A stretch of 64,000 bases of DNA, taken from assembly GCA_973895155.1 (NCBI GenBank), contig OZ316899.1, positions 15,651,974 through 15,715,973 on the forward strand, in the 5' to 3' direction. Source of the stretch: Marsupella aquatica. Its lineage: Eukaryota > Plantae > Marchantiophyta. A model generated the notes under the pieces. The model searched no databases. It was not told the origin of the DNA and saw nothing but the letters and a program-made list of their open reading frames with translations. The translations under genes and the position numbers were made by a program. This document shows positions 8,208 through 64,000 of the stretch, one piece after another (positions within the stretch are counted from its first letter, which is position 1; each line of letters opens with the position of its first letter).

Positions 8208-10979
8208 AAATTATTGATGTTAGGTTTGTCACATATCCACTAAATTTTGAATGACAAGAATCTTACCCAGGGAGGATTCATGATGATGGATCGATATTGT
8301 CAATCGTGGTAAATAGAAAAACCTTCATGGCGGCCGCCGCCGCCACTGAGGATGTATTCACTTTCTAGTCACTTGTAGTGTGAGTCATCAAATGACCGCA
8401 CTCCTCCGGCCCCACTCCTACACAATAATACATACTCCCAAAGTTTGACAGAACTACGAGGAATATATTTTGAGAGTACACTTTTGTGAATTATGAACTG
8501 CCGTTTCCCGCCCTAAACCATAAACTCGCATCCAAGCCGCCCAAAAATTATCCCGACTCCATGCGCCAGTTCGAGTCTGCCTGTCCTGCAAAATCGAAGA
8601 CTGAGGATTCTCATCCTTCAAACGAACCGATCAAGCCCCCGTGCGTGACTTTTGCAATCCCTCCATTTTCTCAGGCAGGGAGGACCAAACCCAATCACAA
8701 CCGAAGCGAGGATTGTCAGCAAGTCTTTCCGTGATCCCTGCCTTGCTAGCTGATCGTCTTAGTGTTCCTTAGTACTCATAGTGTTCCTTAGTACTCTTAG
8801 TGTTCCTTGACACTCTGGTCACTTGATAGGCAGGATATGGTTCTCAAGAAGGTGACCTTCGGAAAACAGCATGAGATGTCTCAAAAATTGAAGGTGGGGG
8901 GGAGGGGGCCATCCTTCAATTGGGACTTACAGGATTGGGTGCACAAGATCCGCGAGCCGCAACACGCGGAATATCTCCAACAGACCGGACTTGCCGACTT
9001 TGTGGTGGAGGTTTGCTGGGATATGAAAAGTTATCCAGACTCGGATATGATACAATTCATACAGAACTATGACCACAAAAAATCAAAGACCTCTGTCAGA
9101 GGTCACCCAATCGATTTGAGCATGGAAAATATTCGGAAGACTTTCCGACTGGAGGGGGGGCCGCCGTTAGACGCTAAAGTGACTAATTACACTCCCACGA
9201 CGTTCAAGGCTAGAAGGGCCACAAATGGTTCTTACAAGTTGACAAATTGCGAGCACACTGTCGTCCGAGAAAGGTTGGCATTCCAATTCACAGCTATTCA
9301 TATTCGGCCAGCAAAGGGCGAGGCGTATTCTTGCCACATAAAGCAGGTGGAACAGTTGGCCAGACATGATTGGGGCGAAAATTTTGGCGGCAAGCTCTGT
9401 GAATCACTTGGCTTAGCTCATAAGAAATTTGTGGACGATAAGATGTTGTCCTACACTTGCCATTTCTCGCTGCATCTTCAAGTCATGCTAAGTGGGCACA
9501 CCCCTTGCGTCATGTCTTTGTCATCCCCGGCTCGAGATGCTTCATGTGATGATGAAAGGGTACAGATCACCCTAAACCCCGATAGATCCGGCTGTGAAGG
9601 AGTTGGAGCAAGACATAACGGAAGAGGCGGCCACTGTGAATGATGCAGGTCTGGACTGGGAGCTGGGTGTTGTGCAAGGTGGGGATGCAGGTGAACGGTG
9701 CCAGTCTCCATAGTACTTGATTGGTTTTTTGGTGGTGACCCCGCACGCAATCCGGAGTCAAACACCGCCAGACGCTGGCAGCGACGGTGGTGGAGTGGAA
9801 GATGATGTGAACAATGCGATCCTCCCCCGGATTTCCACACCTGTTGTTGCTTTACCCAGAGCGGACACATGTTGTCCATGCTCACTCCTCGTAGGAGCCT
9901 TGGAAAAAGAGAACCTGCTACGGGCGGACGAGAATAATAGGATGGCAATGAGTTTCAACCACAAGTTTGATCTCCTTGAGAGCCAACTCCATCAAGTCAA
10001 ACTTCTTCTAGAGGTAAAGTAACAATAGGATCTTACTAGCCATATCATTATTTCCTGTTCATCTGTCCGGACCATCGAGTACGCGTTAGTACGTACTATC
10101 CAAAATGGTCAATTAACTCCTAGTACTTAAACTACTACAAAATCACCAGTGAAAGGACCCTAAATGTTTCCCTTGTCGTACACTCTATTTTTCATTCTTC
10201 AATTCACAATCGCCCTAGCCAGAATGATGAAATATATTGGTTGGCATAGGTGTGTGGTGACGGGAGACAAGTGTTCCATTCTGTACTAGAACCAAATTGT
10301 TTCAATTGTGACATGCAGGCCAGAACTCCTCCCACCACCTCGCACAACAGCGGAGGTGAAGAAGACATGAAACCTGATGTGCGCATCATGTCCGCCCTAA
10401 ATTTGCAGAGAAAATGGATTTTTGATGCATCCGCCCCGAGCAGTCCACCTCCAGCTTCCACACAGGACACCCAAAAACACAAGTCCGTTCGACTTGCCAA
10501 ACCTGAAACAGCCACAATGCAGCCAGCCCAATTTGTTGACCTAGCCGGCAAATCAAACTGCAACACGACGAAACATGAACGCAGACAAAATAGAAGGTGG
10601 ACCGAGGAAGAGGAACAATGCCTCAGAAGTGGACTAAACAGGTGAGTATGGAGACATCCTGCACCGATGCTCCGCGTTCCACTCATATTGTTTGTGCTTT
10701 TCATCACACAATGAGTGACAAATTATTCGTGTATTCTTGCGGCCAAGATGTACGACCTACTATGGGCTAATCATGTGTTTGTCAAGGAACATTCATTCTC
10801 ATTGAATTTCTAACAACAGGTTTGGGAAAGGCAAGTGGAATATCATCAGTAAAGCAAGCTTGGATATTTTGAAAGGTCGAACAGAGGTAAGCTTTGGTCA
10901 TATTAATTTGCAATACCACGTTTCAATCCACGGAATGCAACGACGACCCATCAATTTACTCTTGTATCAGCCTATTCAT

Positions 10980-11310
10980 TAAAAGTGTATTATTATTTGA
11001 TTTATGTACATTTGGGCAATGAAAAGTGTACATTTGACCAATGAAAAGTGTACATTTGGGGATAAAAAAGTGTACAATTGGTCTAAAGAGTGTATATTTG
11101 GGCAATGAAAAGTGTACATTTGAGCATCAAAATATGTACATTTGGCTTAAAAAGTGTACATTTTAGTACATTTGGCCTAGAAAGTGTACATTTGAGTGAA
11201 AAAAGGATACATTTGGCTTAAAAAGTGTACATTTCAGTGCATTTAGTCTAGAAAGTGTAGCTTTGAGTGCAACAAAGAGTACATTTGGCCTAAAAAGTGT
11301 ACATTTTCCT
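10980..11310. repeat. Left subterminal repeat array (AAAAGTGTACATTT, about a dozen copies)
   Basis: Repeated aaaagtgtacattt at ~20-40 bp spacing, directly inside the TIR. Confidence 0.85.
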
Positions 11311-11527
11311 GAAAACTTTTATTGTAATCATTTAAAATAAAGAAATTAATAAAAAATATTTTTAATTATGCACAAAAAATAAACATTCATATTCATAATA
11401 ATCAAAAGTTTAGAAAATGAGTAGATAGTCTACTAAGTAACTAAACACTCAATGGCATGGTCTCACAATATATATAACTCTTACATAAAAACTAGTAACT
11501 ATCTAATTATATCTTAGCTAGTGACAA

Positions 11528-14500
11528 CTAAGTGTACTTGTCCATCCTTTGGAGATAACTTTGGACAGTTTGTAGAACATTTCGAGGAATCTTCAAACCT
11601 CTGCCAACCATGTTTTCTTCCTTCATTCCAGATTTAAAACCATACATTGCAGAATTTGCATACTGCCAATGTTGAGTGTTCTCACCAAATCCTGGATCTC
11701 GTTCCCATGTCTTGGTGGACATGAAACAATTGAGATACCTAGCACTCTCACTCACATCAAGTTTAGAGTGTTTAGGCCTCCACCATTCCACGGGGAACAT
11801 TGGAGCATATTTTTGAGTCAAAGGAGGGTCTCTTGAAGATGCAATTGGGACTTCATGCTTAGGGTCCACCTGACCCAAAGCTCTCACCAACCAGAAATGA
11901 CCTCCACCATTTTTCTTCTCCCAATCATCCTCGGGTCGAAGAAACACAAAGTTTCCTTCACAAATATCCTGGAGGGGAATCCACCGTCCTTGTTCTCTCT
12001 CAGCTCAAGATCCAACAAATGGTGCTGCTTGATCTTCCATCTCTTCCAAGACTTCATTTTGAAGAGCTGTCATCTCTGCATTCTCCTCATCTTCACTTAG
12101 AGGACCACTCTGTTCGCATGCCGATTGGTTGACCTTGTAACCAGTGCTGTGGTTAGTCTTAGGCCAAAATCCATTTTTCAATGGAAATTGATTATTTCCC
12201 TCCCCTTCCATTGCAAGCCCATTTGACAACAGCTCCACAATTCTTTCCCAATATTTAACAAGAGGAAATCTTTCCTTGTATGCTATTGACGTCTCATCAA
12301 TGCAACTCCTTCTCAAAAAATCAAGGTACTTGTTAAGGAATGGGATTATCTCTTCTGATTTTTTGTGTATCTCTCCTATGGATTTAGCTAAGGGTTGTCC
12401 ACTGGGTAAAAGAAGAGAATTTGTTATTGGATCAGTTGCCCAAATGCACCTTCCGCCAACGGGAGCCCAAGCTTGCTTAACATGGGACTTATACTGAAAT
12501 ATTGGTACATTATCTCTCATAGAGAAAAGAAATGATACCGGTTTTGAGTGACCTTGAATATCTTTGACCTTAAAACTTTGAAGATATTCTTTGTAAGATG
12601 CAACTTCTTGTATCAATCTTGGAACTGGATGAATGCTCTCACATTCCCAAACCTCTGCCATTAGTGCAAGAAGGGTTGCAACTTCCTTGTGCTGAACTTG
12701 ATATGATACCTTGGAAAATAGTGCATCAACATCTTCGTGCGTATGACCAACCATTAGAAAGGACATTTGAACAGTTTCAAATATTCCTCTACTCACAAGC
12801 TCCGAGCAAAATGCCATGACCATTTGGTTTTTGTTGTCCTTTGCTGAATTATCCATTTGCAATGTTAGGTGCCTTGGCAAGGGCATGAACAAAGGACTGC
12901 CCTTCTCACCACCCACGTCCCCTCCATCATCCTCATCCTGTCGGGTTGGGATGGTCTCAATCTGACTGTCAGCAGCTCCATCTTCAGAACCAATATACCT
13001 ATTTACTTGAATATTCTTTGGTTCCAAATATCCCGACAAAAATGCATCAAAGTCAAGTAGGGCTTGAAAGAAAGGTCTGTGAGGTTCCCAATGCAAGCCA
13101 TCAAGCATGTCACCTGTCTTGTCTCCATTGTACTCTTCAAGATCTCGAAGACACTTAGCCAAGGATGTCACTGTGAAATCTGCATCTCCTGGCCAAAGGC
13201 CAGTGACACTAAAGTGTGCATATACTCCTGGATCTCTCCCGTGGGTCAACATCCCTGTGAGAGCGATAGGTAGCGGCATTCCATGACCCGAAAGTGATTT
13301 AGGAGTACTAACCATTTTTGGAATCCATGTCTTTGCTTGATCCATCTTGTCGTGAATAATGCAAAGATATTCTCTTGGATGTTGCTTGGCCATCACTCGA
13401 TGAGCGTAGTAAACATATCTACGTGACATTTGCTCACGAAGATGTTGAGCTCTTTTTTCTTCAATTTCAGCACGTTCTTTTTTCCTTCTCTCTCGCATCA
13501 AATTGTCTTTGTATTCACAACAAAGCGTACACTTGGCAAATGCGCCATCCTTGTGAAAACTGAAGTTTGCAAATGATGTGCTCCATATCTTGTAGAGAGT
13601 GTTATCCGTAACAGGAGGAAGCCCTTCTTCCTTCATCTTTGTTCTCACATCTTCCAAAATCTCTAACTTTTTGTAACACGCTGGAAGTCGATACTCAATG
13701 CTGTCTGTCCCATGAGCCCCTCCATAAGGCATATGAGGCATTGGCTCTGCATTTTGAGTCAAAAATGCCTCTAGAAGAGCTCGTGCATGCAAGGTATTTG
13801 ACCTTGTTTTCTTCAAGCCTGTGTTCCCATGGAACCCAATTTTGCAACCCTCCATGTATCTTCTCTTGTAATCATAATACTTGGTGTGACTAAAACCATG
13901 GATGGTTGCAAATGCATCTTTACAGATGACCATACCTTTGAGAACATGGTGTCCCTTATCACGAACATCATCCTCTCTGTAGTGGAAGAGGTTGAAAATG
14001 TGTGATGTTTTGGACTCGCTAGACATCCCGTGAAATTCCATCCTAACATCTTCTATATCTTCCCTTGGCATAATGAGACAACATTTATGCTTGCAGCAAT
14101 TTACTCTTTTGATCTTATCAATTGCGGCTTCTGTTGTTTTTGAAACTGCCTTGGTTTGCAAGAGCCTCCTTTTCTTCTCAACAGGATCAACTTGATTCCT
14201 CTTGTTGAAGTTATATGGCCTTTGACGACATCCGGATGCGGATCCAACCACATGATCCGGATTCAGATCATCCCTATCCATTGACTCCATATTCTCTGTA
14301 CCTTCTACCAGAATGTCTGACAAAAATTTTCCAGTTGCTACTAGTTTTGTGTGATCAATTTGCCATCGAACCAAACTAATTACTCCCTTGTGAATGCTTG
14401 GAAAGTATTGCGATTCCATGACATCTTTCACAGCAACCCCTACATAGTCTTCTCCCAGGATTTCATCATCAACAGCCGCCGTTGCTTGAGGCACAGTGAT

Positions 14501-15343
14501 AGTCCCAATGGCAACCTTACTCGATCGTCCTGAACCAATGTATAATTTGACCAACTCTGACATCCAATTGGACCGTTGGTAATAATCATAATGAGTTTTG
14601 GTCAATTTTGTTGATGGAGAATGTGAGACAAAACTCTCCTCAATTAAAACATCGCCATCACCTTGCTTCTTAGAGGAAGACTTTCTACCTTCATCAACAT
14701 TCCAACCTTTTTTATGAACATCGACCAAGTCCCAGAGAACCCATGAGTCTTTTGCCTCTTCAATTGTTTCAGCCCCATTGTGTATGTAAGGTAAAGCCTT
14801 ACTACCATGAATAACATCAGTGATTTTCACACTGATCCGAGACTCACCAAGTAATATGTTGTGACATCGGTCCTTTGGATTTACCTTGAAAATAACTCCA
14901 AGGGCTACACAACACCCATCAATGAGCATTTCAACCTCGTCCCCTTGCCTTAGAGTGTTTGATGCATCCTCCATAACAATTGTAGGAGATTTATCCAAGT
15001 TATTATCTGGTCGAGTTGAACAACTACCAGTACTGATGCATTTTTGGGAATCTAGAGTTATAGAGAGATACGTGCACGAGATCTCCCAAATAACACATGA
15101 GTCAATGGCATCAAAAAGATTTTCTACCCTTGGTAGTGGAAATGGTAGTTTTCGAGTTGGCTCAAAAACCTTCTCCACGAGCACACCAATTCGATTATCC
15201 CCCAACAATATGTTGTGCACCCTATCCTGGGGGTTAATTTTCTGAACTGTCCCACAACTGACATCATATCCATCAATTGTCAAGGTCACATCATCACCTC
15301 TTGAAAACCTTCCAGTCATTCTTGGATTTAGTAACCTGCACAA
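11528..15343 (-). pseudogene. Sola-like (DUF7869-type) DDD/E transposase with N-terminal Transposase_23/DUF8039-like repeats; one premature TGA at 12005-12007
   Basis: Motifs CIIHDKMDQ, LTLQMDNSAKDNKN and FLMVGHTHEDVDALFS, plus Cys-rich CCKHKC and CTLC. ORF 11528-11947 is in the same frame as 12005-15343, separated only by a TGA (likely CGA>TGA). Confidence 0.8.
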
Positions 15344-15439
15344 TTTTCAGAAAAACCATCACAAATCCGAATGACAAGAATTTGAAGAGACTCACAATTA
15401 TCCATACGGTCATTTGATTGCCATTCCGAGAATCCAAAC

Positions 15440-16860
15440 ATTGGCTCAACTATCACGCTTGGATTGGGGTGGTCCAAATCAAAACCATGAAGATTGTATT
15501 CCGAAGGTCAAATTTAAGCATCTCACTTGAATTGGGATCGTCCAAATCCAAACCAACCTCTATCCAACACACCCTCTTGGATTTGGATGGTCCGAATCCA
15601 AACCCAGATGGGATCCCAAAGGTCCCAATTCAACAAACGCGCTTGGATTGGGATGGTCCGAATCCAAACCCAGATTTTATTTCAAAGGTCCCAATTTGAG
15701 CACCGGGCTTGGATTCGGATGGTCCGAATCCAAAACCAGATTGTATTTCAAAGGTCCGAATCCAACCCACCATCTTGGATTCGGATGGTCTGAATCCAAA
15801 CACAGATTCTATCCCGAAGGTCCCAATTCAACAAACCGGCTTGGATTGGGATGGTGCGCGAATCCAAACCCAGATTGTATTTCAAAGGTCCCAATTTAAG
15901 CATCGGACTTGGATTCGGATGGTCCGAATCCAAAACCAGACTGTATTTCAAACGCCCAAATTCAACCATCTCGCTTGGATTGGGATGGTCCGAATCCAAA
16001 CCGAGATTGGATCCCAAAGGTCACAATTTAAGCATTGCACGCTTGGATTCGAATGGTCCGAATCCAACACACCCTCTTGGATTCGGACCATCCGAATCCA
16101 AAACCAGACTGTATTTAAAACGCCCAAATTCAACCATCTTTCTTGGATTGGGATGGTCCGAATCCAAACCGAGATTGGATCCCAAAGGCCACAATTTAAG
16201 CATTGCACGCTTGGATTCGGATGGTCCGAATCCAACACACCCTCTTGGATTCGGACCATCCGAATCCAACACACCCTCTTGGATTTGGACCATCCAAATC
16301 AAAAACCAGACTGTATTTCAAACGCCCAAATGCAACCATCTTGCTTGGATTGGGATGGTCCGAATCCAAACCGAGATTGGATCCCAAAGGTCACAATTTA
16401 AGCATTGCACGGTTGGATTCGGATGGTCCGAATCCAACACACCTCTTGGATTCGGACCATCCGAATCCAGCACACCCTCTTGGATTCGGACCATCCGAAT
16501 CCAAAACCAAACTGTATTTAAAACGCCCAAATTCAACCATCTCGCTTGGATTGGGATGGTCCGAATCCAAACCGAGATTGGATCCCAAAGGCCACAATTT
16601 AAGCATTGCACGCTTGGATTCGGATGGTCCGAATCCAACACACCCTCTTGGATTTGGACCATCCAAATCAAAAACCAGACTGTATTTCAAACGCCCAAAT
16701 TCAACCATCTCGCTTGGATTGGGATGGTCCGAATCCAAACCGAGATTGGATCCCAAAGGTCACAATTTAAGCATTGCACGGTTGGATTCGGATGGTCCCA
16801 ATCCTAGAAATGGATTGGATTCGGATCATCCGAATCCAAACAACAATCTAGGATTAGGAC
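15440..16860. repeat. Array of palindromes TTGGATT(C/G)GGA-NNN-TCCGAATCCAA in higher-order units
   Basis: Dozens of 25-bp palindromes with 11-bp arms, separated by recurring spacers (aaccagactgtatttcaaacgcccaaattcaacc; accgagattggatcccaaaggtcacaatttaagc). Confidence 0.95.
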
Positions 16861-17843: not shown

Positions 17844-20800
17844 ATGGAAGTTGCCAAGAAAACCGTCATCGTCCTGCTCGCCGAAGAATCTGATGACTTG
17901 GATCTCTCCTCTGTCGGTGATCTTGTGGCCCTAGCGCTTAGGGATTCCCAAGAATTTCAATCTCAAGTCCAAAGTAAGTTTCCGGAGGTTTATTCATGCA
18001 TCTTAAGTTGTTGGATTCGGATGGTCCGAATCCAAGAGCGTTGTTTGGATTCGGACCATCCGAATCCAAGTGGGTTGTTTGGATTTGGATGGTCTAAATC
18101 TAAGAGGGTTGTTTAAATTTGGACCATCCAAATCCAAGAGGGTTGTTTGGATTCGGACCATCCGAATCCAAGTGGGTTGTTTGGATTCGGATGGTCCGAA
18201 TCCAAGTGGCTTGATTGGATTCGGATGGTCTGAATCCAAGAGGGTTGTTTGGATTCGGACCATCCGAATCCAAGTGGGTTGTTTGGATTTGGATGGTCCG
18301 AATCCAAGTGGCTTGATTGGATTCAGATGGTCCGAATCTAAGAGGGTTGTTTGGATTCGGACCATCCGAATCCAAGTGGGCTTCTTGTATTGGATTCGGA
18401 TGGTCCGAATCCAAGAGCCCTCAATCTCACTTTGACAGTGATTTCTTAAAACAAATTTCATGGATTTCAAGTCTAATATGAATTTTCACTCTCCAATGCA
18501 GAGAGTGATCTGGTGAATACAACTCTCGCCATTTCAGAGGCAGACTGCGACGATGGGCTCATTTTGGAGGACCGCGATCCAGGATTTCGGTGGGGACTTG
18601 AGTTCTCGCGAGTTAACTTCCGCCTGAATTCATTTAACATTCAGGATCCAGTGTTATGTGTCAAGATCAGGACAGGCAACAACCAAACATTGGTCATCGG
18701 ACCCGTGGTCTCTGTGGGAATGATAGGAAGAGGAATGAATACTATCATTGTAGAGGTGTCGGACACGATGAGGTGGGCAAAGTTGCAGCTCCCCACAAAG
18801 GCTTTCTCGGCCGAGTTCAATGTGGAATGGTATGCAAGTGGGGAATTAAGTGTGTTGTCGATGGGATTCTTTCCAAAATCCTACACAAAGGAGAAGATTA
18901 TTGGAGGACTGAAGGGAATGCTTCCTTTGGACATTTTTTATGGGTTTCTTTATTTGAAACTCAAAATTGTAAACAACCCATCAAAGTTCTCTCTTCCATC
19001 CACATGGACTCTTAACAATTTGCTTGAGAAAGCAGGTCTGGTGTCACCAGACTCAAATGTTTGGATCGCCAAGGCACTAGCCTTTGCACACACGCTTGAC
19101 CTGGAAAAAGCAAATCTATGGGTAGAGTCTTTGGTGAAGTTGAGAAAAAGTACACAACCACAGAAAATAATTGAGTCTACGCCAGCCAAAGGAACTCCAG
19201 CAACTACGACGGAGACAGCACAAACTACTGCAGCAACAACCATGGATAGAGCGGCAGGCAAGCGAAAGCAGAGGGAGAAGAAGCTTCTGGTTGAGAAACC
19301 TACTTCAGTTGAGAAGAAGATCACGGCTCCAACCGAGAAGAAGAAGCTTCCAGCCGAGAAGAAGAAGCTTCCAGCCGAGAAGAAGTCGAGGGAGAAGAAG
19401 AAACAAAAACCCGACACCGGAGTTGTGAATTCAACTCCTATAGAATTTTCATTACATGCTGAAGATGAGGGTGATAGGCCACATGCTCCAGAGGAGAAAG
19501 ACGTCTTAGAAGGGAATGAAGTTCTTCAACAAATGGAGCAGTACTATACTTTTGGGATAAACGAAATTTTTCTGATCCCAGTTGAAAGTATTTTTGCCGC
19601 ACCAGCGAGACTATGCTATCGGATGATGAATTTTGATCATGTGCAAGACATTGCTGATTCCATGATCAAAACACCTGGGCATGAGCCACATGTCGCTGAT
19701 TTGATTCCTTTTAACGTCGAGCGAAGAAAGGTACTCCACTTTGAGAATACGGAGTCAGACCGGAAGGATTTTTTGGCCGGAGTGAAAAAGGGCGAGGTCC
19801 AATTTCTAGCCGTTAGTGGTCAGCACTCTGCGAGAGCTGCGAGATGGATTCGTGATTGGGCAACGAAGGATGCCAAGCTCACCCAGTTGGCCAAGAAGTT
19901 AGAATTTAGGAAATCCAGAATATTGTCTGATCGCACACCGTCTTCAATTCTTGTTGAGCACTCCATGAGATCGAACGCCATCAATAGCACGATGGTGTTT
20001 CAGTCTTGCTTTAAAGATATAGTTGTCCATGCGAGGCGGCAGTTTGTTGAATGTGGAAATCCAGACAAACCAAAACATGGCGACAACAAAACAAATGCTC
20101 AAGACAACCAAAAATTTCAGGTAAGAAATGTGATTACTTTGTATGCATTTCTCTACCATAGAGAGTAATTCTATTTTGGATTCGGATGGTCTCAGTCCGA
20201 CACGATTTATCAAAGAGTATTGGAACTTTTGGAATGTTTAGTACGAGTTTTGTTTTTGATTGAGACCATCCGAATCCAAAACTATTATCGCACATTAGAA
20301 TCCTTTTTTTCCAACCCTTGCGTTGGGGATAACTGACTAGCTTTCCTTTTGGATTGTAGGATTGGTTGGCTCTGGCAAGAATGACTATGGGCAGGAAGGA
20401 CTTGCAAAATGTATACTGGCTACTTTTTGCGGACAACGATCTTTTTGAGTTGTGGCGGTTAGTCTGTGAGATGTGGTTGCATGGGAAACTTCCTGATGGA
20501 GCTGGGATGGAAGGAAATAACAAGTCCGAAAAAGCAATTACCGTTGCCATGTTTTGTCCCTTTGATGGTGAGTTGATCTCACAGAAAGACATCACAAAAA
20601 TCCTGACACAAGTGAAGTCAGGAAAGGCATTGCTGAAGAAAGATGCCACAAATAAATCTGACATACCCTCAATAGAGGAGCTTGCGAAGGATGTGAAAAA
20701 AGTGAGGAAGCTCAAGTCTCTCATTGAGGAGTACTACTTCGGCAAGGATCCAAGGAATTTCCCTTCGGATACCGACTGGAAGAAAGTTGTAGAGGTTCTG

Positions 20801-22735
20801 CCATTGTTGAGTGTTGACGCAGAATTCAGTAGATGCAGAAGAGCAGCTGGTGAAGTTTTTCTGTCAAATCTGTTGAAGCCAAATCATACCAGGGAGAGTG
20901 CAATCTTGCCAATAGCTCTGGTGATGCGCCTTGATGACATTTATTGCCAGAAGTTTGGCGGAGGGACACATTCTCGGAGCCAACCGTGGGTCACGTTCTT
21001 TAGTGACAATCTAATGAAAACAGTTGATCCACCAGCAATAGAAGAATCATCTCCAACGTGCTCACTTGCCATTGTTGACTTCAGTCGAGATCACCAAAAG
21101 CTGTGGACGGAAGCAGAAGTTTTGGTCTTTCTGCAATACATTGTGGAGCTACCACGAAATCTTACAATCGTTGTAGCCATAACTGTTCATCCGGGGCCTC
21201 TTGCAATGAATGTCCTAAGCTCACTTCAAAAATTGGGACAAGAGAAATCTCTCACCATTCACATTGAGTATGGGAGTTATTCTCGAGAGGATCAACCGCA
21301 CCCGCTTGATTCGTGTTGGGGAGGCGGAATTGAAGAAGTTATATTCGCAGGAATTTCTCGAGATGAAAATGTGAATTGGAATGATGTTTTCAAACCCAAT
21401 CACCCAAAGCCAAAATTCTTTTTTGGTTCAAAAGATACTGATTTTGAGGTCACCAAGATTGACACTGGGAAGGCAAAGGTTGACACAGACGACGTGTCAA
21501 AACCCGAAGATCTAAAAATGATGCTGACCCCAGAAGAGGCGACCAAGGTTTTGCACATGGCCCCTCGATTTGAGATAGTTGGTGCTCGTGGTGGTTGGGT
21601 GAATCCACATGCCAAACCCACGCGGATGATACAGAGGATTATTGAATCCTTGTCAGAAGCTGGAGACTTGATTCTTGATTTTTTCTCGGGTGGTCAAGTG
21701 ATGAAGACAACATTCTTGGTGCAACGCAAATGCTTTGTTTATTGTGACTCTCAAGATGAGAGACACTTTGTGGAAGCGTATGCTTCATTCCTTTGCGAGA
21801 GGGTCCCCTCAATCAATGAAAATTGGGATCCTCGTGGTGGGAGTTCTAGGCATTGGAAACCCACTATTGCGGATGTTTCTGCCGAACATGAATCAGCTGA
21901 TAATTCTGAAGAAGTGGGCGCTAAGTCAGTCAAAGATGATGGGGCATCAGAGGTGGCGTATGCAAAGAATTTGGATGACCGTGTAGGTCAAAGTGAAAGC
22001 ATAGAACCCTACGATGTTGATGATAATGTTGGTCTTGCACCACGCCCTTCATCACGTGCAGATGACGTCCCTTTGGAACCCTATGAAGTTGAGGTTGATG
22101 ACAACTTGGACAAGGATGGTCTCAATCCAAATGTGGTGCAACGAGAAACGGACAAAATTGGTGATCCGATTGACATTGATACATTTGAAAATCGTTCGTC
22201 AACCAATTTGGTCGCGGACGGTGGAGACAGACAGGTCAATTCGAATGAAGCTGACACCCAAAATTTGATTCCCGGGATGGCTGTCGAAGTGCGTGAGATT
22301 CCCATGACCCCAGAAGCCCGTGCATCAGCGACTGTTGACAACCAGGCAAGTGCTTCAATTTGTCCTGACACACTCTTTTCAGCTTCTGATGACAAATTGG
22401 TTTTTGTTCCTTCACACTCGGGAAGTCCAGTTGTCCTTCCTCTCTCAAAGAAAAAAGGGAATAGAGTTGGACCAACCGGATGGAGGTCACTTGAACGTGA
22501 TGCACGATGTTATGTGTGGAAAAGTGGGCCAAATAGAGGCCAAGAAGTTTCATTGGATGCTGCTCCATCGATTCTTAACAGGAAGGAGTATAAGAGAGGA
22601 GAATTGGGATTGATAACTCCTGTTTGGACGTCACCTTATTGGGTAGAACAAAGTACTTCAGATGTCAATTTTGAAATCCAAGAGGAGCTGGGTGTTGATA
22701 TTATTGATGAATACGGATCTCTTTTTTCAGACTGA
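17844..22735 (+). CDS. Intact 3-exon, 1374-aa ParB/Srx-like domain + N4/N6 (beta-class) DNA methyltransferase-like protein
   Basis: Exons 17844-17973, 18502-20120 and 20360-22735 join in frame at GT-AG (4125 nt). ParB-like: IPVESI...YRMMNFDHVQDIADSM...FLAVSGQHSARAA. MTase C-terminal motifs: NPHAKPTRMIQRIIESLSEAGDLILDFFSGG...QRKCFVYCD. The expected DPPY position reads AIVDFSR (degenerate). Confidence 0.75.
18011..18414. repeat. Intronic array of 12 palindromes with ~34-bp period
   Basis: 25-bp TTGGATTCGGA(TGG/CCA)TCCGAATCCAA plus a 9-bp spacer, lying wholly inside intron 17974-18501. Confidence 0.95.
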
Positions 22736-22796
22736 GATCAAACCGTCTGACTTTCCATTTTTTCATACCAATCTAAAATACTTCTCGGTCTCACAG

Positions 22797-24008
22797 AATG
22801 CGGTCAGCAATTAGAGCCTCGATATCCACCTACGCTCTTTGGGGCTTCTAAAAATGGTATGTAGGTTTTCTTTGTTGTTAGTCATTGTCTTGTATTTTTG
22901 GACTGAGACAGTCTCAGTCCAAAGTTCAAATTTGGTTTTCTTTCTAAGAGTTGTATTTGTTGCACTTGCAGAATCGAGACCTTGTCCCATCAAGCGGAAG
23001 TTGCTGATTTTGGATCTTAACAAAATACTTTGGGATTCACTTGAATTCCAAAGCAAGGGCAAATCCAGAAACATTGTGACCCCAAATGGAGTGCATTGGG
23101 ATAGATCAAATGGAACTAGTCGCATGTATACACAGAGGCCAGGGTTCCATGAGTTTCTAAAGTTGGTTTTTGACCGGTTTGACGTTGCAATTTGGACATG
23201 TGCTGGGATACCACGGACAGTGAAAATGTTGAACATGATGTTCACTGTTGAGGAGCGGTTGAAACTGAAGTTTGTATTCACACAGGTGGAAGCCTTTGAC
23301 ACAGGCATTCAAAGGCGTGACATTACAAATGGAAAGGCAAATGTGCTATTGAAGGATTTTCGGGTGGTATGGAGTGCATTTGGAAATCTATATGATGAAA
23401 CCAACACACTCCTTGTGGATGACTCCCCCTTGAAGGCATTTGCCAACCCAGACATGACCGGACTATTTCCAGTGCCCTACACGCATGCCAATCGTGGAGA
23501 CAATTTTCTTCTAACAATTCTTTGGCCATGTCTTGAGAAACTGTCACATGCAAGTGACATTCGTTGTTATCTTCTCCTAAACTCTCCAAAGTGGTCTCTA
23601 TTGCACATTAAGAGAGACAAGGCAAAAAATGAGATTACTTATGATCAACTTAGTAAGAGATGTGCAGCAAAAATTTGGAAGTCACAGTATAGGCATAGTG
23701 TGCTGGACCTCAATAGCAATGAGATTCCTTGGGCTGTGAAGCACCGTATATGTAGCTTACGTCCTGAGGTGGAACTTGACGATGCACTTGTCACCTCACT
23801 TGCTAGATCATTTGTAGGATGGGAATATTCAGGTCTGTATAGAGAAAATCCCAGACACTTTTTGCGGGAGATTATAGCAGTTAGGAACAACACCACCAAA
23901 TTTCATCTCCCTGAAGATAAAGGGAGTTGCAACCGTGACATTAGGGTAGATAGTAAAGGAGACAAGGGCACGTGCTCAAATAAATATTGTAAGGAGCACT
24001 TTGTTTAG
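22797..24008 (+). CDS. FCP1/NIF-like HAD phosphatase domain protein (DxD motif reads DLN); possibly spliced to the upstream gene
   Basis: KLLILDLNKIL, QRPGFHEFLKLVFDRFDVAIWT, LLKDF, TLLVDDSPLKAFANP. An in-frame 60-nt mini-exon (22797-22856) splices to 22972. Confidence 0.8.
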
Positions 24009-48607: not shown

Positions 48608-49412
48608 CGACGGATCTCGGAGAGGCCAGCCGAGATCACTCTTCCTGAGACGGATCTCGGAGAGGCCAGCCAAGATGACTATTCCTGAGACGGATCTCAG
48701 AGAGGCCAGCCGAGATTGACTATTCCTGAGACAGATCTTGGAGACGCCAGCCGAGATGACTTCCTAAGATGGATCTCGGAGAGGCTAGCCAAGATGACTG
48801 TTCCTGAGACGGATCTCAAAGAGGCCAGCCGAGATTGACTCATCCTGAGACGGATCTCGGAGAGGCCAGCCGAGATCACTCTGCCTGAGACGGATCTCAA
48901 AGAGGCCAGCCGAGATTGACTCTTCCTGAGATGGATCTCAGAGAGGCCAGCCGAGATTGACTCTTCCTAAGACGGATCTTGGAGAGGCCAGCCAAGATCA
49001 CTCTTCCTGAGACGGATCTCGGAGAGGCCAGCCAAGATGACTATTCCTGAGACGGATCTCAGAGAGGCCAGCCGAGATTGACTCTTCTTGAGACGGATCT
49101 TGGATAGGCCAGCCAAGATCACTCTTCCTGAGACGGATCTTGGAGAGGCCAACCGAGATGACTATTCCTGAGATGGATCTCAAAGAGGCCAGCCAAGATT
49201 GACTCTTCCTGAGACGGATCTTGGATAGGCCAGCCAAGATCACTCTTCTTGAGACGGATCTCGGAGAGGCCAGCCGAGATGACTATTCCTGAGACGGATC
49301 TCAGAGAGGCCAGCCGAGATTAACTCTTCCTGAGACGGATCTTGGAGAGGCCAGCCGAGATCACTCTTCCTCAGACGGATCTTGGAGAGGCCCGCCAAGA
49401 TCACTCTTCCTG
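48608..49412. repeat. ~39-43-bp tandem array (~19 copies) with internal inverted repeat ATCTCGG-N9-CCGAGAT
   Basis: gagacggatctcggagaggccagccgagat(c/tg)actcttcct repeated. Confidence 0.95.
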
Positions 49413-49613
49413 AGTTGCATGTAGAGGAATGAATCTTGGTGAGGCCCGCCAACATGCATCTCAAGTTAGGACTTGCCCTCGCTTGTAGAGGAGGCCAGAC
49501 ACTATGAATGTCAACGAGGTCAGCCGACATGCATACATATCGGCGAGGCCGCTGACTTGTATCCCTCTATTGTCAACCATTGCGACGAGCAAGCAAATAT
49601 GAAATGAACAACG

Positions 49614-50520
49614 TCAAACGCCAGAAAACTTACATGTTGTTGGGAGTACTGCTGGCTTTTTCTTCTTGCACTTTTCTAGATTGGCTTTTGAACGGACCAC
49701 CTCTTCCTCCTCCGGGGAGATCACTCCAACCAGTTGTGCCAGTTGGTCTTGCGCACAAGTTCCGAAGTGAGGATAGGATTCAGTCCCAAACACCATCCGC
49801 CCGCAATTTTCACCCGCCTTGAATATTGCCCCAAACTGTGCGTTGAAAGTGAGGATAGTTGCCCCATGGTGTGTTGTATATTTGATGATACATTGGAGCG
49901 TTGCTGGTGACAATGTGCCCGCAAAAGGATCGTTAACCTGATTCTTCTTGGAGATGTATAGTTCGTTAGCCCATTCCTACTCTTCATATCGAGCTCTGCA
50001 CTAATTGGTGCCACATCGTCCTTTGGGCATATCTCCACAGCAGATTGAAACCCCCACAGGTCTAGCTTGAGATATTTGCTCTGGATCGGCCAAACATATT
50101 CAGAGGTCAGACTTCCTCAGTTTAGGATAGTAAGTATTGGAATAAAAAATAAATGAAGAAGTAGTAATTGATGGGACTTACTCGCTTCCCAGTCCTACCA
50201 TCGTAGGTGGGTGTGTCATTCCAGATAAAGAACCTTTCTTTCAACCCCCAGTTGGTATTCTCGTAAACTAATGCATCATAAATGCAAGTTGAGTGCCAAA
50301 GCAAACCACTGTGCATGATGGCAAACAGTCCTTCGGAATCAAGGACATCTCGAGCAAACTCCTGAACCTGGTTCAAGTCGTCCTCCCGGAACGAATTCCA
50401 CAACGGGGTGGACTTACCCTCGACCATACGCGTGTCCGTTCCCATATGTATCAGAATTAAATCTGCACCAGTCTTGACTTGCTTCCCCCTTTTCTCTAGG
50501 CATTTTGACGCAAACCTTCT
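49614..50520 (-). pseudogene. Degenerate N4/N6 DNA-methyltransferase-like domain
   Basis: GADLILIHMG...PLWN...FARDVLDSEGLFAIMHSG and SPATLQCIIKYTTHHGATILTFNAQFGAIFKAGENCGRMVFGTE are collinear with the MTase-like segments at 58558-59612. Confidence 0.55.
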
Positions 50521-50574
50521 CGCAATAGCTTGTATTAATGAGTGTGTGTATTGTCAAACTGAATATTGACACAC

Positions 50575-58143: not shown

Positions 58144-61100
58144 TCACGGTTCCCAAGATTCTGAGTGGGAACCAGAATCTGTACTCTGGGATCTGTCTGT
58201 GGACACAGCCTCATCATCTACGTACTGGCTGCGGGAGAAGTCATCAACATAAGGATGTTTAATGAACTTTCGGTCAACACCCCTTCGTAACCGAAGACCT
58301 TTGTTTTCCCAGCAAAGTGTCCTTGCACTTTCTGCTTTCCTTGCGGCTTTCTCTGCATAGGAGGGAAGAACAAACGGTTTTTCCGGTGTTTCTACGTTGT
58401 GTCTCGCGATCTTCCTCCGCAGTTTGAATCGTCTCCTTGCATTCCACTCTGACCTGATATAACAAAGTCCATTTTGTAAGGCACCTTTCCCCAAAACAAC
58501 AAAAGAAATGTTATGAATTGACGGGAATGGAGAAAGAAGCTTACGAGTTTATGAACATTACTCGAAAGAGTCATCACTATCGGTTTCATCTGCAGCTGCA
58601 CGACGCTCTCCCTTTTCCTCCTCAGAGTTTCTTGTACCTTGTTCCTCTCCACCTTCACTCGATTCATCATCAGAATCAAAATTGAGAACCGACCGAAGCT
58701 TATCTTTTTTTTTTCTGTCAGCAGTAGGAACAGGTGGAGGTAACACTGCAATCTCTTTGGGAGACAACAAATCCATGAAAACCTTTGAAGCGGTTTCAAT
58801 AAATTCTTTCCGGTGTTCTATCCCGAGTACAAATCGTCCAGAGAAGTCGCCAGCAATGTAAGAGCCTCCAGCCCCAGCAGTCCAATCCATAAAAAAATCA
58901 CGAGGCCGTGTGACAAGCTCTATAACAGATTGCATAAAACCCACAGACAGACGAGCATTTCCAGCAAACTCCATTTGCGGGAATGGATCTGATTTGAGCG
59001 AAGAGAGTCCGATCAAATTGGTAACCGAAGGGTCCTCACTGATGGACAGCGGCCGAAATTTGGGGTCTTTGGGAATTTTACATTTCCCATAATTCGGCCA
59101 AATATGTCGAGCCTGAGGGTAAACATCTCTCGGTCTGTCTTTGCCGCATACATCGGGTCAGACATCACAACATTATGCGAGCATATACACTGAAATTTCC
59201 TTGACTCCTGACAGGCAGCAATGACTTGCGACATGGGATCGTACTCCCCATTGTGTAGAATTACAAGGAACCCATCATCTGATAAAAATGGATCCATGGA
59301 TTTGAAAAAAGATCTCGCCATTGAGTGATCTGGAATGTTCCATTTAGGAACCTTCTTATCAATGATAGATGGTTTGAACCCGGTCGGTAGGTAAATGAAG
59401 CCGGCATCCACTCCAAACGATCTTACTTTTCCCCCCCGAACAACTCCCTTCTCTTTAAATCCCAACTTAACGAGGTCTTTTCCCCATTTCTCCACATCAC
59501 TAACCCACTCGGGCTTCTCCTCCTTGTTGAACGTCGAGTCAAAAAAATTCAGAAAGGCTTGTCTCAACCATGCAATGGCGAGACACAGTTGTTTTGAAGT
59601 TTCCAACTTCACGTTGGAAACCAGAAGCTATAACACTCTCCCTTAAAGATTGCCCACCTGCGACAGCTCTCTTTTGTTTCTTCCTGGTACTCATGGCGTC
59701 GATAGGAACTATAACCTTCCCTTTGTCGACTGGAGTAATGGGGTCCGATCGAGCTCCCGTGTTTGCCTCGGAAACTTCAGGTGTAGCATCCTTTTTAGTA
59801 TCTCCCATTCCCACCGTATTAGACTTCCTCCCTCCTAAAATATAACCAGGTCGTAGTTAGAATAAGTACTTTTAAAGTATTGAAAGAAGCTAGCGCCTGG
59901 CGCTAACCAAATGCAATTCACTTAAGTCGCAACCGAAGCCTAATAACCAAGAAAGAGAATACCCTCAACAGAATATTTTTTGCCAGCGCCTGGCGCTGGC
60001 AAAATCATGGATAGCAATACTTACTCTTCTTTCCAGATTTAGTAGACCCGCTTGGTGCTGCTAGCTCCGCTTTGGCTTTCGCGCGAGGTTTGCGACTCCG
60101 GTCCACATGCACAACAGTTGTTTCACAGATAGTTTGCAAGTTTGTGGCAGACTTGTCTACATCGTCAAGTAGACCCTGCTTCATGTAGGACACAAGTTTT
60201 GCTGGTATCTGAGACTTTGAAAGCTTATGGAAGGCATCTTTTTCCCTTTGATCAAAAGGAGAATCCCATCTATCTGTATCTAGATACCAGGGGCAGTGAG
60301 TTCTCTCCCATTCTGTCATTGGTCTCGGAGGAAATATGCCCTCCGTGGGGTACATAGAGTACAAATCAGCCAAGGCATCATCTTCACTTATTGAAATCCA
60401 CTTCATAAAAGCTGCAGGATATGCCCAGAAGTAATCAGGTTTGGTTACCTCCATGTGCATGTAGAACCTATACACAAACCTCTTCGCTCGCTTCTGGTTT
60501 CTCTGGGTGTAATCTTCTTTGTCAGGGTACTTTGAAGGCCACATAGTGTGAAAGAACTTATTCTTCACGGAATCACCAAATCTCTTGAATTCATTTGTAA
60601 CAAACTGAACTAGATCATCAAACGAACTACAATTCCACTCTTCCAATCTATTTGCGGGCATGGTTTGCTCAACTTCACGTAGACATGAATGTAACATGCC
60701 AGCAACAATTCCCTCCACACTATTCCAAGTGATCCAAGTGTGGCACCACTGTTTGACTGGATCATCGTTAACACTTGCTGGGTGAAAAAACTGTCTCCGC
60801 AGCTCAGGATTGCAATGTGCCACAAGTAAAGTGCTTCGTAACTTTGGGTCTAGAGCAGAAACAGCGGTGAACAATCGTGTGCGGTCCATCGTACATACAA
60901 CGGTGTCAGGCTTCTTCTCTCTCTTGTTTCTCTCTGTGACAGCATACATTTCTGCACATGTACTGAGGAAATCTTCAAATTCAGGACTTAATAAGGGCGT
61001 AATTTTTGAAGACTTCACTGCCCAATCTTTGGTTGCATCTTTCATCATGGCCGCATGCCGTTTTGAAATCTCGTCCGCCGACCATGGACTCCCTTGAGCC

Positions 61101-62236
61101 TCCGCTGCCTCCATGTCGAGTTTGAATTGATGCGAGTACGACTTTATCTTATTCTCACAAAGAATGTAAACAAGTGCTTCTTGTGGCATCTTCTTCGTAT
61201 ACCATGACCCCTTCCGAGTTTTCAGCCGAATGCTTTCAAACTTCTTGAAATTACCCGGGTCAATCAGTTTACTGTAATACTCAAGGTCATCCGCCAGAAT
61301 TCATTTGATTTTGTCCGCATCCAGGATCCAGGAAGGCTCTACAACTGCTTGGCCAAGCCTACACGAACAAACGTTGAGAGTAAGAGTCAATGAAAAACAA
61401 TTCATGTATAAGCAGCGCCAAGCGCTAGTAAATACAGCACTCGCAAGATTTAAAGAAAGAACTGGAAATCATGAGAACTTACTGATTCACGGTGTGCATA
61501 GCTGCCTCAATTTCAATGAGAGATCCCTTGTCTCCTTTAAATAAATTGTACAGAGCACACGAGGATGATATTTTGGATTGTCCGGGTTCTCCTCTGTTAC
61601 AAGCGTCCAGGAGTACAGCCTGTGATTTCCATCGAATACAGAGAACATCTTATCCTTCAAGACAAGAAAATCCGGGTCAGCCTCGCATTCAGCCTCAAAC
61701 TTCTCGTTCTCCAATTGCCATATTGGATCCCATGAATCACGAATGTCCTGGGTACAGGTCAGAACAATTCCGTTCTCATCCGTTGGCTGCACATAGAAAC
61801 GCATCCCTATCGAAGAGTTGTAACCCATACTACGAAAAGAGTCTTTCAGCTTCTCGATGGAAGAGCTGTCTTTCTGCAGAGTACGAACCACCTCCATGTG
61901 AACCAATCGACACAGAGGGATTCGAGGCGGCTCCTTGTCAAATCCATGAGAATCCTTTCCAAAAGACATGACATGCTTCGAAATGAGATCAGTCTCAGCA
62001 AGCGCGCAATCCGCAACATCCTGGATCGCAATTATGTCTACGTTGTCCATCTTTCTTCGCAAAGGATTTGGACCCAAAACACCACTGACAGAAGTGAGCA
62101 GCAACAACTTTGAGGAACGAGTTACACGACGTGTATAGACTGAACTAGTAAACGAAGACTGCAAAGATTCAGAATAAGCTCGCTCCTGGTCAGGAACCAC
62201 ACTATACCCTCTGGAAGAAGAGGGGAATACCTCCAT
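58144..62236 (-). pseudogene. Multi-exon ParB-like + N4/N6 MTase-like gene, disrupted
   Basis: ParB-like: IPLCRLVHMEVVR...IEKLKDSFRSMGY...FSVFDGNHRLYSW. MTase-like: VDAGFIYLPTG...PKWN...FLSDDGFLVILH and LSVGFMQSVIELVTRPRDFFMDWTAGAGGSYIAGDFSGRFVLGIE. GT-AG introns at ~61359-61482 and ~59836-60023. Several frameshifts and a TGA near 61302. Confidence 0.7.
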
Positions 62237-63214
62237 CGTCTTCCTTCTAGAAGCGTACGAACTATCGTACAATGAAATTATGGAACTATAATCATCTCTG
62301 AACGTGTAATATATTCTAGCGGGAGGATGACATAACCTAGAGGAAAGCCATTAGCTCTGATGTTTGGCGGTTTCCAACGTCTGTATACGGAAGGTTTAAT
62401 TACCAAAATCAAACGGTAGAAGATGCGTAACACACACGGAAGTCATAAGTTACCGTTGAATGTTACCGTTAAAGACATTTCCTAACATCATATCAATACT
62501 AGCGCCGGGCGCTAGCATTAATGATGACCATCAAGGTGAACAATTTAGAGTATGCTTATAATAGCGCCCGACGCTAGTATAAACTGGAAGAAATTTAGAG
62601 GTCTTTTTTGAAGGAGCTATGACATAAATTTCGGCCTTTCCACCCCCATATTTTATTAAAGTATCCTTCAGTACATTGTTTACGGAGAAATATTTCTCAA
62701 ATGTAATACTAGCGCCCGGCGCTAGTATAAATGTTCATTTATCATCCATAATCAATCAAAACCATCCTTTGAAGGCACCATTTATTCCCAATTACCACCT
62801 GGTATGTGGTCATAATGTTCATTTTAAGGGAATTTATTCTATACTAGCGCCGGGCGCTAGTTTGGAATGTCGAGATTTCAGTTTGGAATGTCGAGACACA
62901 TTTTTAGTGGCGTATTTTAGTTAGCGCCAGGCGCTACTAAAATTTGACAATACCTTGTCATATCTTATGGTCTGTTTAAGTAAGGTTGGTGATCTTTTTA
63001 GCAATATGTTCGTGTCTGACATCCGGACTTCTCGGGGAAAAAATGACAAAAATCATTTATGGTGCCAACGGATCCTCCATCGTCTATGTTTTATGTCGTA
63101 TACAAACGGATCGGTTAACGTCAAATTCCCAGGTTCGACAGATATAAGCTGAACAATACCATGAACTTTTCTTCTTTCAAACGCTATAGCCCTCGGTTTT
63201 TGTTTTTGTTCACC

Positions 63215-64000
63215 ATGTCTCGGTCTATCATTCTTTCTCGATTCGGTTCTGAAGATATTGTGACTATCCCCGTCCCCATGGAAGATACGTACAAGCAAGT
63301 CCGGGAGAGGTATCTCTGCGGGAGATTTGATTTGAAGATGAATGACATTGAGGCCATTGTTCGAGAGCTCGAATCCATTGATGATATCGAGGATGCTGCA
63401 ACGTTCAATGTCGATGATGGTGAACGGTTTTGGCATCTCTACGCAGGGATCTCGTACTCGGTTCGTTTAAGACAGCATGCAGGACTGTCCAGTTTCCCGC
63501 CGGTTCCATGTGATGTGGTTGAGATTTCTTCAAGTGAGGATGGAGATCGTACTCTAAGTCCACCGTCGAAGAAGAAAAGCCCGCTCCCTGCTGTCGTGAA
63601 AGCTGAGACTCCGGGAAGCTCTAAGCAGTTGGAGGTCGTGTACCGGCGCAGTGCGATGGATACGTTACTCAAATCAACTGGTCATAGTGAGTTGTCACGG
63701 TTCATATCAGCGGGTCATTTCAAGCATGAACAAGTGTCCTGTCTGCCAACTAAGTACAATGGTAACGTCGTCGCCCATTGATAAGATGCTCTCTAAAGGC
63801 TCTAGGCTTAGGGACATGGATCGTGCCAAAGATTGTTACATTTGGACACGCATATTTCCAACAATTGCAACTGTTCATCCTAAAAACCTTTGGCAGTTTG
63901 GGAAGGTTACCTGTACGGGATTCATTGAATGCAGGAACAAGTCCTGCGACTATTTCCAAAGGAAGAAGAAGGCAAATGCTAAGGCATGGCAGGGTACTCC
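63215..64000 (+). pseudogene. Probable transposase N-terminus (GCM/WRKY-like Zn domain, MULE-type?), frameshifted, continues off the window
   Basis: VSCLPTKYNGNVV, then after a shift near 63775: MDRAKDCYIW...VTCTGFIECRNKSCDYF...NAKAWQG. Divergent from the ParB-MTase gene. Confidence 0.45.

Follow-up and report, generated by a model that had tools for sequence, protein, structure and literature searches.

A 64-kb stretch of the genome of the liverwort Marsupella aquatica (contig OZ316899.1, positions 15,651,974 to 15,715,973; hereafter ‘the window’) contains three genes for proteins that resemble DNA amino-methyltransferases, each accompanied by its own short palindrome repeated in non-coding DNA. 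The window is eukaryotic in character: it has interstitial plant-type TAAACCC repeats, a long terminal repeat (LTR) retrotransposon with gag-pol (38435-42292) and introns, and its nearest protein relatives are found in the liverworts Calypogeia fissa and Riccia sorocarpa. The 53-kb region concerned consists of three separate transposon-derived loci, with unrelated DNA in between: the retrotransposon, coiled-coil open reading frames (ORFs) and a satellite with a 353-bp unit (~50.6-56.4 kb).

At locus 1 (10966-24375) lies an intact 13.4-kb cut-and-paste transposon whose insertion is recent. A perfect 26-bp terminal inverted repeat (TIR) is found at both ends, with a TTGT duplication on each side; the intact ORFs, the perfect TIR and the target-site duplication (TSD) mark the element as young. 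It carries a transposase gene; a divergently oriented accessory gene, gene 1, which is the main subject here; and a gene for a NIF/FCP1-like phosphatase. The first palindrome, P1, forms one array between the divergent genes and another in the first intron of gene 1; the two are inverted relative to each other, and so would bracket a bidirectional promoter region. Elements of the Sola superfamily generate 4-bp TSDs. The locus 1 transposase is probably of this superfamily, which the 4-bp TSD fits; its Pfam match is to DUF7869 only, a domain not mentioned in the literature searched.

The three palindromes are private to their loci. P1, TTGGATTCGGA-N3-TCCGAATCCAA (an 11-N3-11 arrangement), has 34 matches at up to 3 mismatches where 0 are expected by chance, at 15527-16839 and 18011-18414 with a single one at 20255. 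P2, ATCTCGG-N9-CCGAGAT, has 20 matches against 0.2 expected, 19 of them within one tandem array and the last at 47199. P3, TAGCGCC-N-GGCGCTA, has 12 against 0.04 expected, scattered over 56815-62936. None of the three occurs beyond its own neighbourhood within the window, and when all 64 kb were scanned blind for short inverted repeats that recur, these three families alone came up, so that the remainder of the window serves as an internal negative control. The initial annotation of this DNA, made without database searches, had noted just such a confinement, and the counts and the blind scan bear it out. P1 and P2 form mostly tandem arrays, so their copy numbers overstate the number of independent events. 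The P3 sites are embedded in AT-rich flanks unrelated to each other; there, the motif itself recurs, not a duplicated block. All P1, P2 and P3 sites lie outside ORFs and exons, that is, in non-coding DNA; for P3, 12 of 12 non-coding sites in a locus that is ~45% non-coding has a probability of ~7e-5 (simple binomial). The ratio of observed to expected CpG by region was uninformative.

Table 1. Features of the three loci (positions within the window). L001 and L006 to L008 are related elements discussed in the text; P0123-P0129 are homologous proteins; Srx, sulfiredoxin; TRF, Tandem Repeats Finder.
Feature	Position	Strand	Remarks
Left TSD, TTGT	10962..10965		same TTGT at 24376-24379
Left TIR, 26 bp, ATCAGCCTATTCATTAAAAGTGTATT	10966..10991	+	identical to reverse complement of 24350-24375
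Subterminal AAAGTGTACATTTGG repeats, likely transposase-binding sites	11005..11307		TRF period 22/30/71; similar motif at both ends of L001
Transposase ORF, 1112 aa, DUF7869	12005..15343	-	Pfam PF25273, E 1.2e-43
Intergenic higher-order P1 array, 23 sites	15450..16840		directly upstream of transposase gene
Gene 1, putative exon 1, ATG to GT donor	17845..17974	+	sequence reading
Intron-1 array, 12 x 34 bp P1, TGG/CCA centre alternating	18011..18414		equivalent in L001 at 8019-8478 (35-bp x 12.8)
Gene 1, exon 2 (ORF 18513-20168); ParB/Srx-like N-domain 19506-20165, motif SGQHS	18503..20168	+	
Degenerate single P1 site, intron 2	20255..20279		own palindromes also in this intron in L001 and L006
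Gene 1, exon 3; beta-class amino-methyltransferase-like domain ~20948-21865; motif IV position DFSR, motif I DFFSGG	20366..22735	+	
NIF/FCP1-like phosphatase gene, third gene of the element family	22839..24008	+	Pfam PF03031, 6.7e-15
Right TIR	24350..24375	-	pairs with left TIR
Ulp1/C48 protease ORF downstream of gene 2	47393..47860	-	Pfam PF02902, 2.6e-11
P2 40-bp x 20 tandem array	48609..49414		one further P2 site at 47199-47221
Gene 2, 5'-truncated methylase-like remnant; N-half 50122-50553, C-half 49617-49976	49617..50553	-	
Gene 3, four ORF pieces	58144-62272	-	
Gene 3, methylase-like exons; 59013-59612, motif IV position (DKKV); 58558-59016, motifs I-III (DWTAGAGGS ... GRFVLGIE)	58558..59612	-	
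Gene 3, middle exon, 394 aa, without known domain	60005..61189	-	homologous to L008 ORF 1085-2884
Gene 3, N-terminal exon, DGNHR motif, candidate ParB/Srx-like domain	61487..62272	-	homologues P0123-P0129
P3 sites, dispersed	56815, 56938, 57040, 57991, 59891, 59984, 61413, 62500, 62562, 62710, 62845, 62922		outside ORFs

The accessory protein of locus 1 is a composite. In the predicted structure, its N-terminal domain has the alpha/beta fold common to ParB and sulfiredoxin (Srx), a likeness that structure comparison alone revealed: no ParB was found at the sequence level with single sequences, with 3- and 26-sequence profiles against the PDB, or with Pfam on 26 and 8 members. An AlphaFold2 model based on an alignment of 26 relatives (pLDDT 87.6) brought Noc, PadC, ParB and Srx to the top of a Foldseek search (E ~1e-3, probability 0.99-1.0); with VIA, Myxococcus ParB 7bnk was matched at Z 9.3 (root-mean-square deviation 2.3 over 95 aa), and the best 13 rows were all ParB, Noc, PadC or KorB (Z 7.4-9.3), with Srx and SbnI ranking below. 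What is matched is the ParB N-terminal nucleotide-binding domain only. Alignments stop at its end (model residues 20-163), those to KorB and pNOB8 ParB alone extending to ~186; the helices that follow are modelled at pLDDT 54-77, and the ParB C-terminal dimerisation domain was not recognised in the gene 1 protein. At the position of the ParB arginine box the gene reads SGQHSAR, in which G, Q and H are invariant in the 26 relatives; this is nearer to the DGQHR/DndB branch, and one member matches DndB itself at E 0.04. A search of 1.84 billion representatives returned 118 clusters with this domain, none of them with an algal match; the named matches are all liverworts.

The C-terminal part brings a second bacterial-type domain. 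Pfam N6_N4_Mtase matches gene 1 at 1.3e-5, just below the family threshold, and a 15-sequence profile of the methylase part matches M.RsrI in the PDB at 2.8e-7 (spliced gene models were searched exon by exon, not as joined protein). The model is of moderate quality (pLDDT 60.7, core 73-89); with it, Foldseek finds CcrM, RsrI, MboIIA, BceJIV, PvuII and the bdelloid N4CMT at E values down to 9.5e-7, and VIA gives Z 15.5 to CcrM over 211 aa, with beta-class enzymes in all of the top 20 rows. Gene 1 is thus modelled with a beta-class amino-methyltransferase fold and the beta-class order of motifs. The putative motif for binding S-adenosylmethionine (SAM), motif I (FxGxG), is present; it reads DFFSGG and is conserved in 13 relatives. 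The NPxxKP motif is conserved too. The catalytic motif IV, (D/N/S)PP(Y/F/W), is absent from gene 1 and from all relatives sampled: the position reads DFSR in gene 1, and DF[SG]R, DLAR, DLTS or DLIA in the relatives. Absence of motif IV together with conservation of motif I in 13 relatives argues for a conserved pseudo-enzyme, not for decay. The product of gene 1 is accordingly read from its motifs as a presumably non-catalytic ParB/pseudo-methylase protein of ~1370 aa.

Loci 2 and 3 are of the same type as locus 1 but come from another family, which has diverged greatly from the first: locus 2 is a remnant, and locus 3 a possibly broken copy. At locus 2 the gene 2 remnant is followed by the P2 array and then by the Ulp1 protease ORF. 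Gene 2 has no Pfam match of its own; it aligns with an ORF of a related metagenomic element, L008 (40% identity, E 3e-22), and its C-half aligns with gene 3. A joint profile of the last piece of gene 3, its gene 2 equivalent and a homologue matches M1.HpyAVI (7.5e-5) and CcrM (1e-4) in the PDB, and the last piece of gene 3 matches the end of Pfam N6_N4_Mtase at E 0.025; the methylase match of genes 2 and 3 is confined to the C-terminal half. With these results, the proposal that all three genes are methylase-like stands. Motif I of gene 3 reads DWTAGAGG, and the reading frame shifts at ~59013-59016, by a small intron or a frameshift. Since L008 joins a gene 2 relative to a first exon homologous to the first exon of gene 3, genes 2 and 3 belong to one family. 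The DGNHR exon of gene 3 has seven homologues. It gave no Pfam or PDB match; hhalign aligned its motifs with those of the gene 1 domain weakly (E 1e-3, probability 22%), and the ESM Atlas offered ParB_N at rank 13 (score 0.92), a weak lead.

DNA around further homologues was fetched (L001-L009 and L102; L009 is too short to judge for palindromes), and the design of a gene with element-specific palindromes recurs in these related elements. Besides the three loci of the window, palindromes are present in L001, L002, L004, L005, L006, L007, L008 and L102, and absent from L003. Two copies in C. fissa (L001 and L005), whose proteins are 70% identical, have one palindrome in common, TCGCCTCGAGA-N3-TCTCGAGGCGA; L002, from a metagenome, has the Calypogeia GCCTCGAG core in the same register with a non-palindromic centre; L006, also metagenomic, has TTTCACGCGC-N3-GCGCGTGAAA. 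In R. sorocarpa, L007 has ~20 copies of GGGACGCGTCCC, L004 has TTAACCGGCGCCGGTTAA half-sites, and L003 has direct repeats only. The nearest relatives of gene 2, the metagenomic L008 (6 sites) and L102 (2 sites) of the gene 2/3 family, carry P2 itself, in introns adjoining the ParB-like exon. Close relatives, then, share the palindrome motif, whereas elements of the gene 1 branch keep the 11-N3-11 geometry and the positions of their arrays and differ in the half-site. The transposon-borne pairing of gene and private non-coding palindromes that the initial annotation had put forward is therefore recurrent: the layout is kept, and the palindrome changes from one related element to the next.

A close counterpart of locus 1 is L001, which matches it in size and order, with similar subterminal repeats, a transposase, the ParB-methylase-like gene and the NIF gene; its 35-bp x 12.8 array sits where the intron-1 array does in the window, and related elements keep a 33-35-bp array in intron 1. 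L005 has the same gene content; in L006 the NIF gene is found together with the ParB exon and the methylase. Compared with L001, the transposase of the window is 47-66% identical (66% in the C-terminal part, 47% in the N-terminal part), the NIF protein 54% and the accessory protein ~39%; the subterminal repeats are similar, the palindromes unrelated. The better conservation of transposase and ends than of accessory protein and palindromes fits a division of labour, in which the ends belong to the transposase and the palindromes to a faster-evolving reader. The NIF/FCP1-like gene, of the RNA polymerase II carboxy-terminal-domain phosphatase type, follows the ParB-methylase-like gene in all gene-1-type elements examined, namely in the window and in L001 (13735-14610), L003 (17306-18127), L004 (16846-17892), L005 (13037-13747) and L006 (4927-5640), and looks like a conserved third component of the element. 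The gene 1 family is shared by liverworts of at least two classes; certain motifs in it are invariant, and the introns keep their positions.

Exact P1 had no matches in metagenomes. A scan for exact P2 retrieved 120 metagenomic contigs, nearly all with a single match and without a related gene; only L102 has the ParB-like exon, and the scan says nothing about the host genome. In the sequencing runs of the four best holders the contigs are of DNA type and high depth, and the family is thus multicopy in two related organisms.

One way to understand these arrangements is that the accessory protein binds the palindromes of its own element and so regulates or protects that element, an interpretation to which we give somewhat better than an even chance. 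The protein would be a non-catalytic, dimeric, sequence-specific DNA binder that recognises the palindromes of its own element family; each element has spread copies of its own short palindrome through promoter region, introns and 3' flank; binding would regulate or protect the element's own transcription, promoter region or chromatin; and the transposase would have the subterminal GTACATTT repeats as its sites. Both beta-class methylases and ParBs act as dimers, and an 11-N3-11 geometry that persists through changes of the half-site argues for a dimeric reader that is itself conserved. A bolder version is offered tentatively, as possible and rather improbable: liverwort cut-and-paste transposons would have a eukaryotic counterpart of ParB/parS, in which a dimeric ParB-domain pseudo-methylase reads an 11-N3-11 palindrome reinvented in each lineage and, from arrays around the bidirectional promoter and in the introns, perhaps with the co-inherited NIF phosphatase, maintains transcription of its own copies or protects them from silencing; the palindrome would then be a re-targetable code in an arms race with the host.

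Several points weigh against these ideas. That it is the accessory protein, rather than another, that binds the palindromes, that it does so as a dimer, and what follows from binding, are inferences. No ParB helix-turn-helix (HTH) or other DNA-reading domain was recognised in the gene 1 protein, and the target-recognition domain (TRD) region of its methylase part is acidic and modelled with low confidence. ParBs that form a cytidine triphosphate (CTP) clamp have a conserved GERRxR arginine box; with SGQHSAR in its place, the box is not conserved, and a CTP-clamp mechanism is not supported. The analogy with ParB/parS, as first drawn, was therefore overstated: it rests on the N-terminal Srx-like domain only. 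The N-terminal domain of gene 3 is at most a candidate ParB domain; of the two ParB fusions originally proposed, structure comparison gave both folds for gene 1. Sequence profiles do not link the gene 1 and gene 3 families: gene 1 family profiles did not detect gene 2 or gene 3 in a six-frame translation of the window, phmmer with gene 2 and gene 3 pieces against the fetched proteins and loci found their own family only, and BLASTP of gene 1 against gene 3 gave nothing. The four DNA-type holders showed no splice joints and so gave no evidence of expression or for the exon model, which is predicted from sequence. Finally, the co-divergence of motif and protein is imperfect. It holds for L001 with L005 and for gene 2 with L008 and L102; L002 shares the Calypogeia half-site and the window does not, although protein identity to Calypogeia is 39-41% for the window versus 34% for L002, and the homologous locus L003 has direct repeats and no palindrome, which is the case of a gene without an array that had been named as evidence against the module.

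Some of these points would also suit another arrangement, in which the palindromes are read by something else (the transposase or a host factor) or are structural, hairpin-prone repeats expanding by slippage, and the accessory protein does something unrelated, for example within the transposition complex or as a general factor acting on chromatin or against silencing. A protein without a recognised DNA-reading domain, a gene without palindromes in L003 and a motif that does not strictly follow protein identity are all compatible with it. P1 and P2, being largely tandem arrays, could have grown by slippage, but P3 is dispersed in unrelated flanks, and the 11-N3-11 geometry is kept across changing half-sites. 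The transposase might be the reader, as it has a repeated N-terminal domain of its own, with a weak TNP1/En-Spm match in L005; however, the subterminal repeats are the better candidates for transposase sites, conserved as they are while the palindromes change, and in red algae the combination of a ParB-domain gene and inverted-repeat arrays is seen again beside a transposase of an unrelated superfamily (10.1101/2025.02.11.637652). We regard a different reader, or purely structural repeats, as unlikely.

A further possibility supposes that the protein is an active DNA methyltransferase, directed by its ParB-like part to the palindromes and marking its own element with N6-methyladenine or N4-methylcytosine, a role that has been suggested for the algal proteins described below. 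The full beta-class fold, the conserved motif I (DFFSGG or DWTAGAGG) and the conserved NPxxKP would agree with this, and the half-sites of P1 contain GATTC/GAATC, that is, GANTC, which is the target of CcrM. GANTC is absent from the other palindromes of the family, however, and the overlap in P1 is probably a coincidence. Moreover, motif IV, which holds the target amino group, is replaced in every member examined (DF[SG]R, DLAR, DLTS, DKKV). Self-marking by methylation, one of the roles suggested in the initial annotation, is thus quite improbable. Least probable of all is that the genes came horizontally from bacteria or phages and persist as decayed passengers or pseudogenes with no function today, amid palindromes that are neutral satellite DNA. 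In favour of this are the fragmentary gene 2, the frame break of gene 3, the in-frame stop of L001 and the DNA-type contigs of the sequencing runs, which do not support expression. Against it, the ~1370 codons of gene 1 have stayed open in a young element, the family with its invariant motifs and intron positions is common to two or more liverwort classes, and the design recurs in independent families.

Binding by an accessory protein to its own element, the reading preferred here, has been proposed before for comparable transposons. A 21.5-kb element of Ectocarpus, Sola1-1_Ec32, has a gene for a 1104-aa protein with ParB-like and N4/N6-methyltransferase domains opposite the transposase gene, and the authors, who cite green and red algal cases, suggested that such proteins may form a class of accessory factors that bind the transposon encoding them and modify it (Dinatale et al. 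2025, PMC12477816). In the Plavaka (EnSpm-type) transposons of the red alga Bostrychia moritziana, the accessory gene PAG3 encodes an N-terminal ParB-homologous domain and lies adjacent to tandem inverted-repeat arrays across families; PAG3 was proposed to bind its own element (Petroll et al. 2025, 10.1101/2025.02.11.637652). ParB-HTH-methylase fusions have been listed in chlorophytes and chytrids, none in land plants (Iyer et al., PMC4738411). A literature search found no further papers. The architecture and the idea of self-binding were therefore already published for algal transposons (PMC12477816; 10.1101/2025.02.11.637652), and the label ‘candidate new system’ is withdrawn.

Ectocarpus Sola1 resembles locus 1 in being a large cut-and-paste transposon with the accessory gene on the strand opposite the transposase, and its product resembles that of gene 1 in exceeding 1000 aa and in joining ParB-like and DNA amino-methyltransferase domains. 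It differs in its host, here a liverwort, and in the family-wide absence of motif IV found here; the published account of it, on which the comparison rests, mentions neither palindrome arrays nor a NIF phosphatase partner. The Plavaka gene is likewise a transposon accessory gene with a ParB domain beside inverted-repeat arrays, but its effector domain is a 2-oxoglutarate oxygenase, its methylase is in a separate gene (PAG2, fused to SET), and its transposase superfamily differs from that of locus 1. What the liverwort elements add to the algal reports is the occurrence in a land plant, the family-wide loss of motif IV, the NIF phosphatase partner, the fixed site geometry with changing half-sites, and the placement in introns and promoter region.

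By analogy, the closest functional counterparts would be two pairs of protein and site: the plasmid ParB-family protein KorB and its operators, and Arabidopsis VANC and the motifs it binds. The bacterial pairs ParB-parS, Noc-NBS and KorB-OB share with gene 1 the N-domain fold, and in each case the replicon or element carries several palindromic sites of its own; the KorB sites, too, cluster at promoters. They are unlike it in that there is no sequence-level match, the box reads SGQHSAR, no HTH or C-terminal dimerisation domain is recognised, and the present genes are eukaryotic, with introns, and fused to a pseudo-methylase. In VANDAL elements with VANC, and in maize En/Spm with TnpA, an accessory protein is paired with a motif multiplied in the non-coding DNA of its own element. 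The resemblance is functional only: a short motif in the element's non-coding DNA, differing between related families. The protein folds are unrelated, and the liverwort motifs are truly palindromic, their half-sites a fixed distance apart. CcrM, M.RsrI, M.MboIIA, M.PvuII and the bdelloid N4CMT, finally, share with gene 1 the fold, the motif order, NPxxKP and FxGxG. Such beta-class amino-methyltransferases are dimeric enzymes that act on short, often palindromic sites; in gene 1, by contrast, motif IV is missing, the TRD region is an acidic low-complexity stretch, and the protein has ~1370 aa.

If the preferred reading is true, plants would have a second, structurally unrelated solution to transposon self-recognition, after VANC, and bacterial or phage parts (ParB and methylase) would have been turned into a non-catalytic DNA reader. 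Close proteins with different 11-N3-11 targets would then form a natural series for the re-coding of specificity, and such proteins could serve as programmable DNA binders.

Some further features of the window and of the related elements deserve mention. The N-terminal 350 aa of the locus 1 transposase contain three copies of a ~70-aa repeat, the L005 version of which (16974-18956) matches Pfam Transposase_23 (TNP1/En-Spm) at 1e-6; these copies may be what recognises the subterminal GTACATTT repeats, and the gene 1 N-terminus has no similarity to them. Just upstream of the gene 1 start codon there is a 13-bp x 7.5 tandem repeat (TCGCTCCTCACTC, 17618-17714), and also upstream of the start a 15-bp repeat (17491-17543), in a putative promoter or 5' untranslated region. 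In Calypogeia, just outside the studied element (L001 19087-22436 and L005 4735-5425), there are further recurrent inverted repeats, AATGACA-N7-TGTCATT about ten times and CTGCGAG-N6-CTCGCAG five times at ~130-bp spacing, which are possibly neighbouring elements with palindromes of their own. The half-site of bacterial parS is GTTTCAC; the L006 half-site TTTCACG (12-130 and 1642-1760) overlaps it, probably by coincidence, and the other palindromes of the family are without it.

Among the homologues of gene 3, P0129, on a Logan contig, encodes a 156-aa product in which the beginning of the ParB-like exon runs straight into the methylase motif I region, the result of either an internal deletion or alternative splicing in the gene 3 family. 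The 353-bp satellite (window 50600-56400) has at least 4.3 copies at 54514-56027 and related units from ~50.7 kb; it holds plant telomere-like heptamer runs (GTAAACC/TAAACCC) and abuts the 5' truncation of gene 2. The retrotransposon ORF (38435-42292, minus strand; 1285 aa, gag-protease-reverse transcriptase) is unrelated to the palindrome genes; GC-rich coiled-coil ORFs lie on either side of it (29-37 kb and 43-45 kb).

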